DNA from: Basidiobolus meristosporus CBS 931.73
Lineage: Eukaryota > Fungi > Basidiobolomycota
Length of the DNA: 64,000 nucleotides
Assembly: GCA_002104905.1 (NCBI GenBank)
Contig: MCFE01000286.1
Coordinates: 1 to 64,000, forward strand
Reading direction: 5' to 3'
Position numbers and translations under genes: made by a program
Notes under the pieces: generated by a model
What the model was told of the DNA's origin: nothing
The model's input: only the letters and a program-made list of their open reading frames with translations
The model's database searches: none
Part shown: positions 7,935 to 18,107 of the stretch, piece by piece
How positions within the stretch are numbered: the stretch's first letter is position 1
Layout: each line of letters begins with the position of its first letter

Positions 7935-10412
7935 TTGTATTTTGGCACACTGATAATTTGTATATATTCTATGTTGGTTTGTATAAAGTTGGCTTATCGC
8001 ACATACATACAAAGAGCGATCACCAAGGTGATTGCGGACAAGTACGAGTTAATAAAGGGGGCTATTCACATACTTCAACATCCCACCGTGCCACTCGCTT
8101 TACAATGGCCCTTCGATGGTTGTACACTAATAACAATGGATCCATGCTGATCTTCAGCGATCAAAGGTTGTCAAGGCAACCCCAGCATGAATGCTCACTA
8201 GCACAAATGATGCTTTGAAATGGCCCGTCACCCCAGTCTTCGAAATTGAATGAAGCCAACCAGAGCAAAATGCACGGCAATCTCAAGTCAGGAATCACGA
8301 CCCTAACTTTTCACAGATTAAGTTTCATCAATGCTTTGTAATATTTGGATAATGTATCCGGAACAAGCGGATCATGTTGGATTGATAAGGATTCACCCCA
8401 CAATGGTCTATCACCCCCCACTACGCGCTCGTATCCATTATAGGATTTGACGTGTGCATCGTCACGGCCCTGGTTTCATGTAAAGTAAGATGCCGTTGAT
8501 TCCTACAGGATGGACATAATTCTTTGTTAGACGCCACAATGGCGGTGAAAAGAATGGACCAGACATTTGTTGGGGTCGAGAAGAAACCGGGTGTGCATTG
8601 AACGCTGGGCTTCCGAGAATTCAATTTTTTTCATTTGAATCCATCACCAGATGATTGACTTTCCGGATTGAAGCCGGTCTCTTCTAACAATCCAAGTTGA
8701 CCAGAAATGCCTTCTTTCGTATGGTGCTCTGCCTCTGCGTTGAATATCGCTGAGCGACGATTGTTCTCAACTATAGATCTAGATTATGCATGTATTTACG
8801 CAGCATAGCGTAGTGAACCTGCCATCTCCGTGTTTCATAGACATGACGAAAATAAGATACTTGGGTCGAGATTCACTCAGGATTCCGAAAAACAATCCAT
8901 GCTGATCGTTTTGAGTGCCAAAATTCAGTCCACAAAACAAATTCATGAATCCTGGCTGTAGATTACTAATGGGCGGGTCTCTAAAAAAAGCCCAATTTAC
9001 ACCATTCCGAACGCTTAGGTATTCAAAGTGCTCTGACTGAGTTCTGTGAGATCATATGTAGCATAATCCTGCCGAAGCTAGTTGATGTGCAGCAATCTGG
9101 CTGTACGGGTGGGCGCACTGTAGACCAGCTCACGACAACCTTCGTAATTTCTTTCCCAAGATCATAGGCGCTTAGAATGATTGAAGGGCTCTGATGTACC
9201 TGGAATACAAAAACCTACCAGACTACGATAAATATTTTGATCATATATTCGATTCGATTAATCAAAAGGATGGGAGTTTTGATCGGTACTCCACGATACC
9301 TTACACCCCGCGAATTCGGCAGCTGGGAAATAAATACAACCTCTCAGTCCTGCCCTGAGAAAGAAGGCGCAACAGTCTTTGAAGAACCAATCCCTTGCAA
9401 CAGCTACTTATTTCGTAGGTGGCTATGACGAGGATGATCGGGAAATGAGGTCAACAGTACATCTCAAAGCCTCTTTGTGCCCTTGACAGAGCCTTATGCC
9501 GACATGACCAAGTTTATTCCGGATTCACATAGTCTTCGAGAATGAGCCAACCGAGCTCTGTACGGAATAGCCGGTTTGGCAGATGTCAACCGTTCATTTG
9601 GGATAATGTATCCTTTATATCCGAGATTATTTCAGCTACGATCGTGCTCTACAAAGAGTAATAGGATCAATCGAACCATACACTTGGCTGTTTGTTTACA
9701 GTACACATGGAAATCGGGGCCCAAACTTGAGACAATCGACCCAAGGATCTCTCCTAGTACTAGGCGCATGTCCTGTAGAATCTTTGATAGGCCACCATTG
9801 AATGCCAGGAATAGCGAGACTTATTATTGAGGCCGAGTGGTCGAAAACTCCACCGCTTGGGTATCGATTAATCTGATAGCGGTATATACCCTTCATCGAA
9901 TAGTGATTAACCTTTGGCGATGATGATGCAGACGCGAATTTGTAAGACAAAGTGTAGACTATGACTCGTACCGTATACAATGTTCATATTAGTATGATCA
10001 ATCAAAATCTCTCGAGCAGGGAACCAAGAAATACCAAATTTGGTGATTCAGAAAGCTAGGGGTAGACATGTGTAGAGAAAAGCAGAAATATTGCTCCGAT
10101 TAGGTATGTTTGCCTGCCGAAGACCTAGGACAAAGTGCTATCAAAAACCTAAATGAGTAGAACTGATGAGGGTGATCCAATAGATTTTCTTCGGATTCTC
10201 CCCCCGTATTACCATAGGCCCTCTAAACGGGATAACATTAGCCATGTGAGAAGTGAAGTTATGAGAATTGTCTGCAAAAAGACGGCCGCGTAACACCATA
10301 CGATGAAAGCTGAATTTAATGAGCTGTAACGAATGGTCATTTGATTGCCCCCAAACATACACAGATTTATCAAGATATTGGAAAAGTAATAGGACCAAAA
10401 GTAAGCGCTTGA

Positions 10413-10420
10413 CTATAAAT
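10413..10420 (+). promoter_or_regulatory. TATA box of ARG1 copy 1 (CTATAAAT)
   Basis: TATAAA lies ~60 bp upstream of the ATG. Copies 2 and 3 have their own TATAAA at ~12408 and ~14401. Confidence 0.5.
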
Positions 10421-10476
10421 ACACTGCCCACACTGGCCTATTTTGTATCTCATACATTTCTAGCTCCTCAATCATC

Positions 10477-11721
10477 ATGTCTAAAGGAAAGGTTTTACTG
10501 GCTTACTCTGGTGGTCTCGACACCTCCTGCATCCTCGTCTGGCTCATTGAGCAGGGCTACGAGGTTCTCGCTTACCTTGCCAACGTTGGTCAAGAAGAGG
10601 ACTTTGATGCTGCTCGCGAGAAGGCACTCAAGATCGGTGCCTCGAAGGTGTTCATCGAAGATTTGAGACGTGAGTTCGTCGAAGAGCTCATCTACCCCGC
10701 TGTCCAGGCCAACACCATCTACGAGGGTGTCTACTTGCTTGGCACATCTCTTGCCCGCCCCGTCATTGCTCGCCGCCAGATTGAGCTTGCCAAGCAGGAA
10801 GGCTGCACACATGTGTCCCATGGATGCACCGGAAAGGGTAATGACCAAGTCCGCTTTGAGCTCGCTTACTATGCACTTCAGCCTGATATCAAGGTTGTCG
10901 CCCCTTGGAGAATCCCCGAGTTCTTCACCAGATTCCCAGGACGTGCCAGCCTGCTGGAGTACGCAGCTGAGAAGGGAATCCCTGTAGTCCAGACTGCTGC
11001 CAAGCCTTGGTCCACTGATGAGAACCTGTTCCACATCTCCTACGAGGCTGGTATTCTCGAGGATCCAAGCGTCACCCCACCCAGAGATATGTGGAAGCTC
11101 ACCGTCGACCCTGAGGATGCCCCCAATACCCCCGAGAGAATCTCCATCAAGTTCGAGAAGGGCAAACCAGTCGAGGTGAAGAACCACAACGACAACACCG
11201 TTGTCACCGATGCTCTTGAGCTCTTCACCTACCTCAACACCCTTGGCCGTCGCAATGGCATCGGTCGTATTGATATCGTCGAGAACCGTTTCATTGGTAT
11301 CAAGAGCCGTGGTTGCTACGAGACCCCTGGTGGCACCATCCTCCGTGCTGCTCATGTTGACCTTGAAGGGCTAACCCTGGATCGCCAAGTCAGAGCTTTC
11401 CGTGACGAAAGTGTGACCCCGGCACTGTCCAACCTTTTGTACAACGGTATGTACTTCTCCCCCGAGAGCACCTACCTCCTCTCCACCGTCGCCGCCTCTC
11501 AAGTGTCAGTGAATGGTGTTGTCAACCTTAAGCTTTACAAGGGCAATGTCGTTGTTGAAGGACGCTACAGTGAGACCGAGAAGCTGTATGATATGGAGGA
11601 GAGCTCCATGGATGTCCAAGGAGGCTTCAGCCCAGAAGACTCTGAAGGCTTCATCAAGATCCAGAGCATTCGTCTCAAGAAGTTTGGTCAATCAGTTGCC
11701 CGTAATGGTGGCAAATTCTAA
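10477..11721 (+). CDS. ARG1: Argininosuccinate synthase, copy 1 (414 aa, intronless)
   Basis: Contains the ATP-binding motif LAYSGGLDTS, plus YLLGTSLARP, HGCTGKGNDQVRFE, STDENLFHISYE and ENRFIGIKSRGCYETP. Confidence 0.98.
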   Translation: MSKGKVLLAYSGGLDTSCILVWLIEQGYEVLAYLANVGQEEDFDAAREKALKIGASKVFIEDLRREFVEELIYPAVQANTIYEGVYLLGTSLARPVIARRQIELAKQEGCTHVSHGCTGKGNDQVRFELAYYALQPDIKVVAPWRIPEFFTRFPGRASLLEYAAEKGIPVVQTAAKPWSTDENLFHISYEAGILEDPSVTPPRDMWKLTVDPEDAPNTPERISIKFEKGKPVEVKNHNDNTVVTDALELFTYLNTLGRRNGIGRIDIVENRFIGIKSRGCYETPGGTILRAAHVDLEGLTLDRQVRAFRDESVTPALSNLLYNGMYFSPESTYLLSTVAASQVSVNGVVNLKLYKGNVVVEGRYSETEKLYDMEESSMDVQGGFSPEDSEGFIKIQSIRLKKFGQSVARNGGKF

Positions 11722-12472
11722 TCAGAGGCCTATGCATGTATAGACTATTCATGTATTTTATGGGGATTCATTCAATTCAATGCAAATAATAAACATCCTG
11801 AAGCATAGTCAACATTGCATAACACTTGGTTCTTTGAAGATACTGCCTTGGTGAGACTCGAAAGTATAAAGCACAATCTCTTACAATGTATGAGAAATAG
11901 ATTGAGATTGGAGTTGTTACATTTAGCATTCGAGAGTAAGTAGCAACATTCATTACGTATGCCTGATCAATCATCACCATAAATCTATCTAGCAAATCAC
12001 TGGCTTCGTATCAATCGTGACTCCATTTGTATACAATATGGAGATGCAACTATCTTGGCTCTTCGGTGGCTTTTACGGCCAATCAACGGCAGGACTGCCT
12101 CAAATTTTCCCATGCGGTAGGCACAAATTTGCTGATTCCTATTTGGGTACAGGGAAATATCTTATTTTGGAGATGGTTGGTTTCTACCGTTAACATGTGC
12201 AAAAAGAAACTGTCCAGGAATTCCTTTTCTGGACCATCGTACAACCTACAACCACATGTTAACATACTTTTCGATACGTATGGCGAAAAGCACCCGGAGC
12301 AACTGCACTGTATTGAATCAAGTGGAATATATATTTATTGTTTTCATTAAGATGATAGCATCTTGATAACTGGACACATGACTGGAGGAGATTTCGAAGT
12401 CGTGAAATATAAAAACCATGGATTCCGAAGGACGTCAACATATCAACACTGACTTCACTGTTAAATAGTAAA

Positions 12473-13717
12473 ATGGCTCAAGGAAAGGTTTTATTGGCTT
12501 ACTCTGGTGGTCTCGACACCTCCTGCATCCTCGTCTGGCTCATTGAGCAGGGCTACGAGGTTCTCGCTTACCTTGCCAACGTTGGTCAAGAAGAGGACTT
12601 TGATGCTGCTCGCGAGAAGGCACTCAAGATCGGTGCCTCGAAGGTGTTCATCGAAGATTTGAGACGTGAGTTCGTCGAAGAGCTCATCTACCCCGCTGTC
12701 CAGGCCAACACCATCTACGAGGGTGTCTACTTGCTTGGCACCTCTCTTGCCCGCCCCGTCATTGCTCGCCGCCAGATTGAGCTTGCCAAGCAAGAAGGCT
12801 GCACACATGTGTCCCATGGATGCACCGGAAAGGGTAATGACCAAGTCCGCTTTGAGCTCGCTTACTATGCACTTCAGCCTGATATCAAGGTTGTCGCCCC
12901 TTGGAGAATCCCCGAGTTCTTCACCAGATTCCCAGGACGTGCCAGCCTGCTGGAGTATGCAGCTGAGAAGGGAATCCCTGTAGTCCAGACTGCTGCCAAG
13001 CCTTGGTCCACTGATGAGAACCTGTTCCACATCTCCTACGAGGCTGGTATTCTCGAGGATCCAAGCGTCACGCCACCCAGAGATATGTGGAAGCTCACTG
13101 TCGACCCTGAGGATGCCCCCAATACCCCCGAGAGAATCTCCATCAAGTTCGAGAAGGGCAAACCAGTCGAGGTGAAGAACCACAACGACAACACCGTTGT
13201 CACCGATGCTCTTGAGCTCTTCACCTACCTCAACACCCTTGGCCGTCGCAATGGCATTGGTCGTATTGATATCGTCGAGAACCGTTTCATTGGTATCAAG
13301 AGCCGTGGTTGCTACGAGACCCCTGGTGGCACCATCCTCCGTGCTGCTCATGTTGACCTTGAAGGGCTGACCCTGGATCGCCAAGTCAGAGCTTTCCGTG
13401 ACGAAAGTGTGACCCCGGCACTGTCCAACCTTTTGTACAACGGTATGTACTTCTCCCCCGAGAGCACCTACCTCCTCTCCACCGTCGCCGCCTCTCAAGT
13501 GTCAGTGAATGGTGTTGTCAACCTTAAGCTTTACAAGGGCAATGTCGTTGTTGAAGGACGCTACAGTGAGACCGAGAAGCTGTATGATATGGAGGAGAGC
13601 TCCATGGATGTCCAAGGAGGCTTCAGCCCGGAAGACTCTGAAGGCTTCATCAAGATCCAGAGCATTCGTCTCAAGAAGTTTGGTCAATCAGTTGCCCGCA
13701 ATGGTGGTAAATTTTAA
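12473..13717 (+). CDS. ARG1: Argininosuccinate synthase, copy 2 (414 aa; N-terminus MAQG instead of MSKG)
   Basis: Same motifs as copy 1. The protein is identical to copy 1 except at residues 2-3. Confidence 0.98.
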   Translation: MAQGKVLLAYSGGLDTSCILVWLIEQGYEVLAYLANVGQEEDFDAAREKALKIGASKVFIEDLRREFVEELIYPAVQANTIYEGVYLLGTSLARPVIARRQIELAKQEGCTHVSHGCTGKGNDQVRFELAYYALQPDIKVVAPWRIPEFFTRFPGRASLLEYAAEKGIPVVQTAAKPWSTDENLFHISYEAGILEDPSVTPPRDMWKLTVDPEDAPNTPERISIKFEKGKPVEVKNHNDNTVVTDALELFTYLNTLGRRNGIGRIDIVENRFIGIKSRGCYETPGGTILRAAHVDLEGLTLDRQVRAFRDESVTPALSNLLYNGMYFSPESTYLLSTVAASQVSVNGVVNLKLYKGNVVVEGRYSETEKLYDMEESSMDVQGGFSPEDSEGFIKIQSIRLKKFGQSVARNGGKF

Positions 13718-14184
13718 GGGAAAACCACTGAGGCAACGAAATACTTCCAATACGGTATATAGAACGCACCACATCAATACACCCTTCCATCCGTAACACT
13801 GTTAGATAAAATGTTAATATCTCAAATTTATTGTCCCAACAATAAAGTAATTTGACACATAGTCTCGAAAGTCGGCTCCGACAGGAATTCGTCAGTAAGC
13901 TGGCTCTAATCACGGCTCTGCTAGCGCAGTGTAGTAACAATAGCAAGCGAATCTTTGCGACTCGGGCTCAACTTGACCTCATTTCCGTCACTTACGTAAC
14001 AACGCTTCAAAAGATTCCTCTTGGGGAGGTGGTTCATACAAAATAAATCAATGAAATTGAAATCAAACTATGTATTTTAGTGCTTTTCCCCATCGTAACA
14101 CACTGGTTACCGGAGATGATTACGAATTGACCACTAACTAGCCAATAAAGGGTTCCGTGCTGTTATAATATGGGCCCAATGTTT

Positions 14185-14193
14185 ATGACTCAT
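14185..14193. promoter_or_regulatory. Perfect Gcn4/CpcA (AP-1-type) response element ATGACTCAT upstream of ARG1 copy 3
   Basis: ATGACTCAT lies ~280 bp upstream of the ATG. ARG1/argininosuccinate synthase is an established target of general amino-acid control in ascomycetes. Confidence 0.55.
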
Positions 14194-14474
14194 ATCGTTG
14201 TAACTGTGACTTGAAGATTCAGAGACAGGTTGACAAATTGGCTCTTGAAAAATGATTTATTTTCGGTATCGCTATATATCATACCATTTATAGCTGTGCA
14301 CAGTCGCACTAATGGAGAGATCCGGTCATCAGATCTAGACAAAAAGCAGATATACTATAGCACATGCGCTATTCCAATCATCAACCTGTAACGATGAGAA
14401 TATAAATCGGAAGTATACCTGCTCAAAGTTTCAGCTGCTGTTAGCATCTAACATCTTCTAGTCCCTCACTTATC

Positions 14475-15719
14475 ATGTCTAAAGGAAAGGTTTTACTGGC
14501 TTACTCTGGTGGTCTCGACACCTCCTGCATCCTCGTCTGGCTCATTGAGCAGGGCTACGAGGTTCTCGCTTACCTTGCCAACGTTGGTCAAGAAGAGGAC
14601 TTTGATGCTGCTCGCGAGAAGGCACTCAAGATCGGTGCCTCGAAGGTGTTCATCGAAGATTTGAGACGTGAGTTCGTCGAAGAGCTCATCTACCCCGCTG
14701 TCCAGGCCAACACCATCTACGAGGGTGTCTACTTGCTTGGTACCTCTCTTGCCCGCCCCGTCATTGCTCGCCGCCAGATTGAACTTGCCAAGCAAGAAGG
14801 CTGCACACATGTGTCCCATGGATGCACCGGAAAGGGTAATGACCAAGTCCGCTTTGAGCTCGCTTACTATGCACTTCAGCCTGATATCAAGGTTGTCGCC
14901 CCTTGGAGAATCCCCGAGTTCTTCACCAGATTCCCAGGACGTGCCAGCCTGCTGGAGTATGCAGCTGAGAAGGGAATCCCTGTAGTCCAGACTGCTGCCA
15001 AGCCTTGGTCCACTGATGAGAACCTGTTCCACATCTCCTACGAGGCTGGTATTCTCGAGGATCCAAGCGTCACCCCACCCAGAGATATGTGGAAGCTCAC
15101 CGTCGACCCTGAGGATGCCCCCAATACCCCCGAGAGAATCTCCATCAAGTTCGAGAAGGGCAAGCCAGTCGAGGTGAAGAACCACAACGACAACACCGTT
15201 GTCACCGATGCTCTTGAGCTCTTCACCTACCTCAACACCCTTGGCCGTCGCAATGGCATCGGTCGTATTGATATCGTCGAGAACCGCTTCATTGGTATCA
15301 AGAGCCGTGGTTGCTACGAGACCCCTGGTGGCACCATCCTCCGTGCTGCTCATGTTGACCTTGAAGGGCTGACCCTGGATCGCCAAGTCAGAGCTTTCCG
15401 TGACGAAAGTGTGACCCCGGCACTGTCCAACCTTTTGTACAACGGTATGTACTTCTCCCCCGAGAGCACCTACCTCCTCTCCACCGTCGCCGCCTCTCAA
15501 GTGTCAGTGAATGGTGTTGTCAACCTTAAGCTTTACAAGGGCAATGTCGTTGTTGAAGGACGCTACAGTGAGACTGAGAAGCTGTATGATATGGAGGAGA
15601 GCTCCATGGATGTCCAAGGAGGCTTCAGCCCGGAAGACTCTGAAGGCTTCATCAAGATCCAGAGCATTCGTCTCAAGAAGTTTGGTCAATCAGTTGCCCG
15701 CAATGGTGGCAAATTTTAA
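14475..15719 (+). CDS. ARG1: Argininosuccinate synthase, copy 3 (414 aa; protein identical to copy 1)
   Basis: Same motifs as copy 1. It differs from copy 1 only at synonymous sites. Confidence 0.98.
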   Translation: MSKGKVLLAYSGGLDTSCILVWLIEQGYEVLAYLANVGQEEDFDAAREKALKIGASKVFIEDLRREFVEELIYPAVQANTIYEGVYLLGTSLARPVIARRQIELAKQEGCTHVSHGCTGKGNDQVRFELAYYALQPDIKVVAPWRIPEFFTRFPGRASLLEYAAEKGIPVVQTAAKPWSTDENLFHISYEAGILEDPSVTPPRDMWKLTVDPEDAPNTPERISIKFEKGKPVEVKNHNDNTVVTDALELFTYLNTLGRRNGIGRIDIVENRFIGIKSRGCYETPGGTILRAAHVDLEGLTLDRQVRAFRDESVTPALSNLLYNGMYFSPESTYLLSTVAASQVSVNGVVNLKLYKGNVVVEGRYSETEKLYDMEESSMDVQGGFSPEDSEGFIKIQSIRLKKFGQSVARNGGKF

Positions 15720-18107
15720 ATCATATTTTTATACCATTTTGCCAATATCTCTTAGAGTCTCAGGCGAGTTCTTGAACGAGCCATTGAATACTCTTATTTA
15801 ATGTTTCACGAAGATCGCTAGAAAATGTCCATATGTCTTGACATCGATTCAAACGCAAAATGTTACTCTTGGATCCATATTTTTGTAGATAACCCACCAC
15901 CTAAACAATGTGGCATAGCAGAATAAATCCGTTGTTGTGGTCGATGTCAATTTCTACCAGCACAGCAATCATGTTGAGTATGCATTATCAGCAATGATAG
16001 AGTGAAGGATGATTTAACTATTTTGCTGGCTTTGCTCATATGGGAAGAACTTGTCAATATCCTACTCCTTGTTTAAACATATGTATCTAGTGTCAGACGT
16101 TGGCACAAGCCCCTCGCTCATAACTCATCTGGTAGGGTACGTTGTATTCTGGAATAGACTGCCAAATGCGAAGGAATTTTTCCGAGATCAACAATCAAAC
16201 AGGCCCTTCTCGAAACACCTTTTGGAGATTATATTGAACACTACATTATCCATCTCGACAGCTCTTATGCACTTACGGCGTCTTCCTCGGGCCATCCCTA
16301 CCACGTTTGTCTGATAAGGTCTCATGGATTTACCAATATCGTTCCCGCAAAACATACCTGGACGAATTGGATTAATACACTCAACTAGAATAACTTTCAG
16401 GAACACATAGTGGCTCATTACCAGTGTTTTCATGTAACATTCAATTCAAAGTATGTTTAGATATTTATCCATTTATAAATCCTAACAAGTTAAACTAAAG
16501 ACATGCTAGTTGATTAAGGATACAGGATACCTTCTCCTGCTATGTCTATTGTGAAAGAGGGTAAGAGACCAGGACTACATTGGCGATAGTAGCGATACAT
16601 ATACAAGTTCTTGACGGAACGGTCACCCATATGTTGTTCAGGTAGTGGACGAGCGAAGTATGAGGATAATGGAAAGGAAGGAATGGAAAAGAGTATTGCT
16701 TTCTAAAGATCATCCTCGGTACTAACACCATTCATTGAGCCAAACATGGTCGACTTCGGATAAGGGCTACGCGGTAGTTTACAGCTTTCTTTTAACCAAT
16801 TTACATCTTTCGAAAAAGATATCGACATGTTATTCTTGCGAGAAGAGCTCTTGGCTCCAGTTGAAATGACGGGGTTGCTCCTTGTAAGCTCTATCGTCTG
16901 AGTGACAGTGGACATGGCAAAGAACCAATAGTTGCGGCAGGGTTGCAATATAAGTATGCTTAATATGAAGTTGTTCGAAACCCAGTCCCAGAGGTAAGAG
17001 CTGAGGTCTGGATATTTATTGCTTTACCTACACTGTGCTGAGCTCATGTTACTTCCATGGCGATCATGTGAATGAGAGTATATATGAAACGCTGCTAGTT
17101 TAGGAATATGAAAAGGCTAAGGGCGAATATTAAATCTCCGTGATTTGAATTTACATCCAGAGAGTGGTGACACTTCATGAACACATCAATTTGATGCATG
17201 CCCGTGATATCATGTTGATGTCAGTCTTGTTGTGGTCGCTTATTCATTACTCCAGAGTCCCATATATATCACGGACTAAAACCCAATGGACCATCTTAGT
17301 GATGAAAGTTTATTACATTGGCACTGTCCCATAATTTTGCGATTTACTCGTGGACTTACAAAAAGGCCCTGATGATCACCTTTGGTAATTTGGTTTCAAG
17401 CACACACGTAGAACCCAGACATTCGTTACCCCATGTGGTCAGGGATTGGACTAGATGTGCGAGATTAGCAATTGCTTGGAAATTGGTTCTTCCGCCCGCG
17501 TGATATATCTTTGTATGGTATATTAACGCTTAGTGCCTGAACTATCTTCCTAAATATCATTATTATGCAACCTAATTCAAAGCGGTACCGAAAAGCTTAC
17601 ATATGCCCTTTGTAGGTACGATGCAAGCTCGATACCAAGGACTGTCATGCGCGACACCGGACCACGATGTAAGATGTTGGAATTGGCAACCCAAAATTTG
17701 TTCATTCACCATGTCGTCAGGGTTCATTTAACAAATTCACATGGAAACGGAATGCAAAATTTCTTGTGACCTCATGGATGGTACGATACCCTTTGCAGCT
17801 TGTTCATAGTTCCCAATTATCTTCAGTCTGCATCATGTAGGGGGCTTGAGTAATAAACTGCCAAATTAAGGACGAGTTGAGAAGATTAGCTTCAGCTGTT
17901 GCATATTCACTTGTTTAGTAGTGCGAATCCTAAGACTTGGATTAGAGTTTACAAAAGCTAAATGGTGAAAAGAAATTACAAGAGGCGAGGATGAAGGTCG
18001 GCATATGGTACTGATATAGCTGAAGGTAGGACAAAGACATCATAAGTAATACTGTTGAATTTGTACAAGTGATTCTTTTCAAGTAGCTCTGCGACTGCAT
18101 ATTATGT

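Follow-up and report, generated by a model that had tools for sequence, protein, structure and literature searches.

We analysed a window of 64,000 nucleotides from the fungus Basidiobolus meristosporus CBS 931.73 (assembly GCA_002104905.1, contig MCFE01000286.1, positions 1 to 64,000), in which three genes for argininosuccinate synthase (ASS) lie head to tail on the + strand. The copies, designated A1 (10477..11721), A2 (12473..13717) and A3 (14475..15719), are intact and intronless. Each runs for 1245 bp from ATG to TAA and encodes 414 amino acids, and the repeat periods are 1996 and 2002 bp. Both domains of the enzyme were identified in the open reading frames (ORFs) well above the Pfam gathering cut-off of 27 bits, namely PF00764 (N-terminal HUP domain; E = 1.5e-65, 220.6 bits, profile coverage 1-162/162) and PF20979 (C-terminal domain; E = 2e-77, 260.2 bits, profile coverage 1-218/219). 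The signatures AYSGGLDTS at residue 9 and GCTGKGNDQVRF at residue 116 were also found; we take the family motifs to be AxSGGxDTS (the ATP pyrophosphatase loop) and GxTxKGNDxxRF. The array proteins share 71-85% identity over 97-100% of their length with annotated enzymes from Zoopagomycota, Mucoromycota, chytrids and Basidiomycota. Each ORF is thus predicted to encode a complete ASS (EC 6.3.4.5, fungal ARG1 type). All three genes were previously annotated on MCFE01000286.1, whereas a fourth copy elsewhere in the genome, designated B and described below, is a new observation here. Antisense ORFs of 286-335 codons are present within every copy (10495-11355, 12491-13498 and 14493-15500, - strand) and are probably a by-product of sense-strand codon composition.

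The three coding sequences (CDSs) vary at 19 sites, with 12-14 differences per pair, corresponding to ~99% identity. Seventeen of these sites are synonymous, and the remaining two occupy the first position of codons 2 and 3 in A2, which begins MAQ where A1 and A3 begin MSK; these are the sole amino-acid differences in the array, the proteins of A1 and A3 being identical. An earlier note on this DNA, made from the sequence alone, had put the differences at about 15-20 and described all of them as synonymous save codons 2-3 of A2. Our count agrees on both points, and every codon pair that the note had quoted as an example is present. The comparison of synonymous (dS) and non-synonymous (dN) divergence that it had proposed gave pairwise Nei-Gojobori values of 0.036-0.043 for dS and 0-0.002 for dN. 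Silent changes account for only 23% of the possible single-base changes in the ASS CDS, and the gene-body changes were silent in 17/17 cases (P ~2e-11). We therefore conclude that purifying selection acts on all three copies.

No similarity was detected among the array copies past the TAA, the sequences being unrelated from the stop codon on. The copies are separated by two spacers of 751 bp (11722..12472, the A1 3′ flank and A2 promoter) and 757 bp (13718..14474, the A2 3′ flank and A3 promoter). Flank homology was tested with MAFFT, with local alignment under two scoring schemes and shuffle controls, and by in-register diagonal identity. No homology between the two spacers was detected by local alignment under either scheme, scores being those of shuffled sequence, and the same held for mutual comparisons of the 751 bp before A1, the 757 bp after A3 and both spacers. 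Comparison of the spacers with the flanks of B also revealed no homology. A marginal alignment score between the regions upstream of A2 and A3 (z = 3.5) was taken as chance. Both spacers are unique within the window, and searches of them for tRNA, Rfam and Pfam matches gave none. On the 5′ side, the 19 nucleotides of 5′ untranslated region (UTR) preceding the A1 start codon (10458..10476) resemble the A3 stretch 14456-14474, in register with the ATG; 14/19 bases match (74%, versus 99% within the CDS; P ~5e-5). These data uphold the earlier statements that identity ends at the stop codon, that the 3′ flanks are unrelated, and that a faint 5′ UTR trace links A1 and A3.

The fourth ASS gene, B (ORY06099.1, scaffold MCFE01000019.1), was recovered as a member of a 90%-identity protein cluster. 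It shares 85-86% DNA identity and 97% protein identity with the array copies, at a dS of 1.0-1.16. Its surroundings are collinear with the window, with a reductase-Hcp fusion gene, an HSF-domain gene, ASS, a downstream segment, and LSM, ATP-synthase subunit h and TPR genes in the same order, and this block carries a single ASS gene. The A/B dS of ~1.1 shows that silent sites of the ASS gene are free to change, and this divergence rules out codon bias as the source of the within-array identity. At fourfold-degenerate sites, identity reaches 97% within the array, compared with 50% between the array and B. We also rejected a recent exchange between the array and B, as their differences are evenly spread (8-21 per 100 nt). 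GC-biased conversion was likewise set aside: fixed differences with G/C in the array and A/T in B numbered 84, and those with the opposite pattern 67, only a weak trend, with G+C at third codon positions of 0.62 in the array and 0.58 in B.

The collinear duplicate extends from 1792 to 29762 of the window, i.e., its first ~30 kb, and matches MCFE01000019.1:160632-181876. Nucleotide identities along it are 79% for the Hcp fusion, 70% for the HSF gene and 85% for ASS, followed by the LSM/ATP-synthase-h and TPR segments. For the Hcp-fusion pair, silent divergence has reached saturation (Nei-Gojobori dS ~3). The two blocks are thus an old duplication, and their sequences point to an ancient segmental or whole-genome duplication. 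A p450 gene of the MCFE01000019.1 block (block positions 15489-16967) had no nucleotide match in the window at E < 1e-3.

The B locus also gave information on the promoters. A 345-bp region upstream of A1 (10079..10423, + strand) is homologous to the B promoter, with a local alignment score of 296 against a shuffle mean of 104 (z = 11.5). The two promoters share five collinear motifs, AAAAACCTAAA, CCAATAGA, CCCCGTATTAC, ATGTGAGAA and a TATAAAT box (10414-10420 in A1), the last located ~55-63 nt upstream of the ATG. The longer motifs were not found upstream of A2 or A3, where only TATA-like boxes are present at a similar distance from the ATG (12408-12414 and 14401-14407, respectively). A1 thus retains the ancestral promoter, with A2 and A3 preceded by unrelated upstream DNA, which suggests that the three array enzymes may be regulated differently. 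Among Gcn4-type boxes, a single TGACTCA was found in the ASS promoters, upstream of A3 (14186-14192). Across the 64 kb, the AP-1/Gcn4-type heptamer TGASTCA occurs twice, compared with 11.2 +/- 3.4 expected from dinucleotide shuffles, 100/100 of which had at least 2 matches.

The distribution of differences within the CDS was uneven. The outermost 25 nt at the two ends together contain 6/19 variable sites (P ~7e-5, for a window size picked after the data were seen), three of them in the first 22 nt and three in the last 19 nt. Such an excess is expected where conversion weakens towards the limit of homology. Support for the groupings also differs between the 5′ edge and the gene body. Sites 4 and 7, together with the 5′ UTR trace, group A1 with A3, whereas body sites 267, 309, 690, 813 and 1101 group A1 with A2, a pairing that received 96/94 support in a maximum-likelihood (ML) tree. 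Codons 2-3 of A2 read GCT CAA, the same as in B, and the 5′ edge of A2 would thus fall just outside the homogenised tract. Lysine at position 3 is the widespread state in fungal ASS; even so, the simplest account is that the common ancestor of the array and B had MAQ, and that MSK re-arose in one array copy and was then copied to another together with ~19 nt of 5′ UTR.

Taken together, these results very probably reflect an old tandem triplication whose CDSs have been homogenised by gene conversion under strong purifying selection, as the earlier note had proposed: dS of ~0.04 within the array stands against flanks that cannot be aligned and a fourth copy at ~1.1. A duplication aged only dS 0.04 would have left spacers ~96% identical. 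As the spacers cannot be aligned, the duplication must be old, with the CDSs homogenised since. The array spacers resemble in this respect the bulk of the non-coding DNA when the two old blocks are compared, and the 97% identity at fourfold sites of the CDS contradicts the shuffled-level match of the non-coding DNA adjoining it. Under this reading, a ~2-kb unit with an ARG1-type ASS gene would have been duplicated twice in tandem, long enough ago for the spacers to lose all detectable similarity. Non-allelic (interlocus) gene conversion would later have repeatedly copied the CDS between array members. Conversion tracts would start and stop only where the copies were still alike and, with protein-level selection keeping the CDSs alike, the homogenised block would become pinned between the ATG and the stop codon. 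Purifying selection would have acted on all three copies, the gene body tolerating no amino-acid change, and all three are probably expressed. One enzyme under three promoters may provide extra dosage and possibly different regulation.

Homogenisation need not be templated by DNA. Reverse-transcribed ARG1 mRNA recombining with the genomic copies ('copy correction') would also account for a homogenised block that coincides with the transcript part common to the copies, and the array copies are intronless while neighbouring genes in the sister block have introns, their gene spans exceeding their coding lengths. However, the single-copy B gene and the available part (CDS positions 175-1178) of the Basidiobolus ranarum gene are intronless too, so that intron absence is independent of the array. 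Moreover, the UTRs are already unrelated, hence DNA- and cDNA-templated conversion predict the same boundaries, and the sequence shows neither a reverse-transcriptase footprint nor a poly(A) remnant. We consider copy correction improbable. Intronless copies whose similarity ends at the stop codon could alternatively result from a recent triplication (~dS 0.04) of the CDS only, for example by retroposition or processed-copy insertion, with flanks that were never related. Yet the stop codons are not followed by poly(A) tracts, and there is no intron-bearing parent, the sole other copy, B, being intronless and at dS ~1.1; these features, with the unrelated UTRs, exclude processed retrogene copies. 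Three same-orientation insertions at a regular 2-kb spacing would also be a striking coincidence, the 5′ similarity of A1 and A3 (74% over 19 nt, against 99% in the CDS) fits old homology, and A1 sits on the ancestral promoter. A recent CDS-only origin is thus very unlikely.

The extra copies could also be false, arising from misassembly or collapsed haplotypes. The Basidiobolus genome is reported to be very large and at least diploid, with copy-number differences between genes (Henk and Fisher, PMC3281927), a setting in which such errors might arise. Against this, the copies are separated by spacers found nowhere else in the window, as the earlier note had argued from the unique flanks, and the assembly is built from PacBio reads (PMC7466969). 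The copies also differ by substitutions, 17/19 of them silent, and not by the indels typical of read errors. We regard an assembly artefact as very unlikely.

Several observations nonetheless weigh against an old triplication homogenised by conversion. No conversion tract was statistically detected inside the gene, 19 sites being too few, and the incongruence between edge and body involves 2 sites versus 5. The great age suggested for the triplication is deduced solely from the unalignable spacers. Their near-equal lengths (751 and 757 bp) fit an origin as tandem units, without residual homology in support. A further departure concerns A3. When the array was rooted with B, A3 had accumulated 0 derived changes, compared with 11-12 in A1 and ~10 in A2, a departure from a molecular clock. 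Under conversion the copies are all equally old at a given site, so that conversion alone fails to explain this pattern.

A3 has the B state at 5/5 of its own private sites and an ML branch length of zero, whereas the body-private alleles of A1 and A2 match B at 0/12 (Fisher P = 1.6e-4). A Tajima-type count, hand-tallied from the site table, gave 11 changes on A1 versus 0 on A3. Short B-to-A3 conversion tracts were rejected as the cause, as each would be 6-17 nt at most, and so was codon preference, the derived codons mixing preferred and rare ones. The B. ranarum fragment, which splits 7 to 5, was of no help on this point. Either mutation or constraint may be unequal among the copies, or the pattern may reflect chance combined with a distant outgroup; conversion or mutation may be asymmetric within arrays.

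Comparison with a second Basidiobolus species involved one B. ranarum fragment, contig JASJQH010013733.1, whose 1004 nt lie wholly within the ASS CDS (positions 175-1178). Its identity is 86% with the array copies and 83% with B, its dS to the array is 0.95-1.0, and it is equally distant from A1, A2 and A3, with 10 amino-acid differences from each. The ML tree separates A1, A2 and A3 from B and this fragment as a clade with 100/100 support. Within-array paralogues are thus much closer to one another (dS 0.04) than to B (dS 1.0-1.3 in this comparison) or the B. ranarum sequence, which fits concerted evolution. A search with the C-terminal fragment returned no further Basidiobolus ASS pieces. 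The B. ranarum contig starts and stops inside the ASS CDS, as a short-read assembly of collapsed near-identical copies would give, and this species may carry several ASS copies too. Its annotated 232-amino-acid product differs from the straight translation of the called gene range.

The earlier description of ASS as normally single-copy proved too strong: B is present in the same genome, and several early-diverging fungi list two ASS proteins. In Entomophthora muscae, two ASS paralogues listed on one 21,472-bp contig are 93% identical. Nearly all of their differences lie in the first 183 and last 60 residues, the central 160 being nearly invariant, a pattern that suggests a possible conversion mosaic in a further member of the Entomophthoromycotina. 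No publication on gene conversion in Basidiobolus came up in our literature search.

Other housekeeping duplicates are known in which concerted evolution is limited to the CDS, including yeast TEF1/TEF2, ribosomal-protein gene pairs and Drosophila hsp70. Like the ASS array, these combine near-identical CDSs, silent sites included, with unrelated flanks and their own promoters, and interlocus gene conversion together with purifying selection is the accepted cause in such cases. The ASS array differs from them in comprising three tandem copies, in encoding an enzyme of amino-acid biosynthesis, in belonging to an early-diverging fungus, and in having an un-homogenised copy, B, as outgroup. In ribosomal DNA (rDNA) and histone arrays, the whole unit is homogenised, spacer included, largely by unequal crossing-over. 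The earlier likening of the ASS genes to such arrays stands as regards tandem copies kept alike within a genome. It does not extend to homogenisation of the whole unit, as the 751-/757-bp spacers have no detectable similarity. Homogenisation is limited to the CDS, a pattern indicative of conversion rather than unequal crossing-over. Indeed, the unrelated spacers exclude unequal crossing-over as the homogeniser of the present array. Tandem arrays of duplicated protein-coding genes also occur in Trypanosoma brucei. In a study of them, long arrays are linked to increased gene dosage, and concerted evolution and gene conversion are treated at length (Jackson 2007, PMC1855330). The T. brucei arrays are polycistronic and lack individual promoters, whereas each ASS copy has its own TATA-type promoter region, ancestral only in A1.

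As an instance of gene conversion the ASS array is clear-cut but unexceptional, and nothing new about arginine biosynthesis is learned from it. It nevertheless offers a textbook-quality example of conversion confined to the CDS, in which the un-homogenised B gene serves as an internal control. It is doubtful, although conceivable, that the array is also one sign of ectopic gene conversion running at an unusually high rate throughout the Basidiobolus genome. If true, such a rate might be tied to the nucleus, which is large and probably polyploid, and it would allow numerous identical enzymes to be maintained under different promoters. Routine homogenisation of neighbouring paralogues would bear on orthology calls, on the dating of duplications and on short-read assembly in Basidiobolus.

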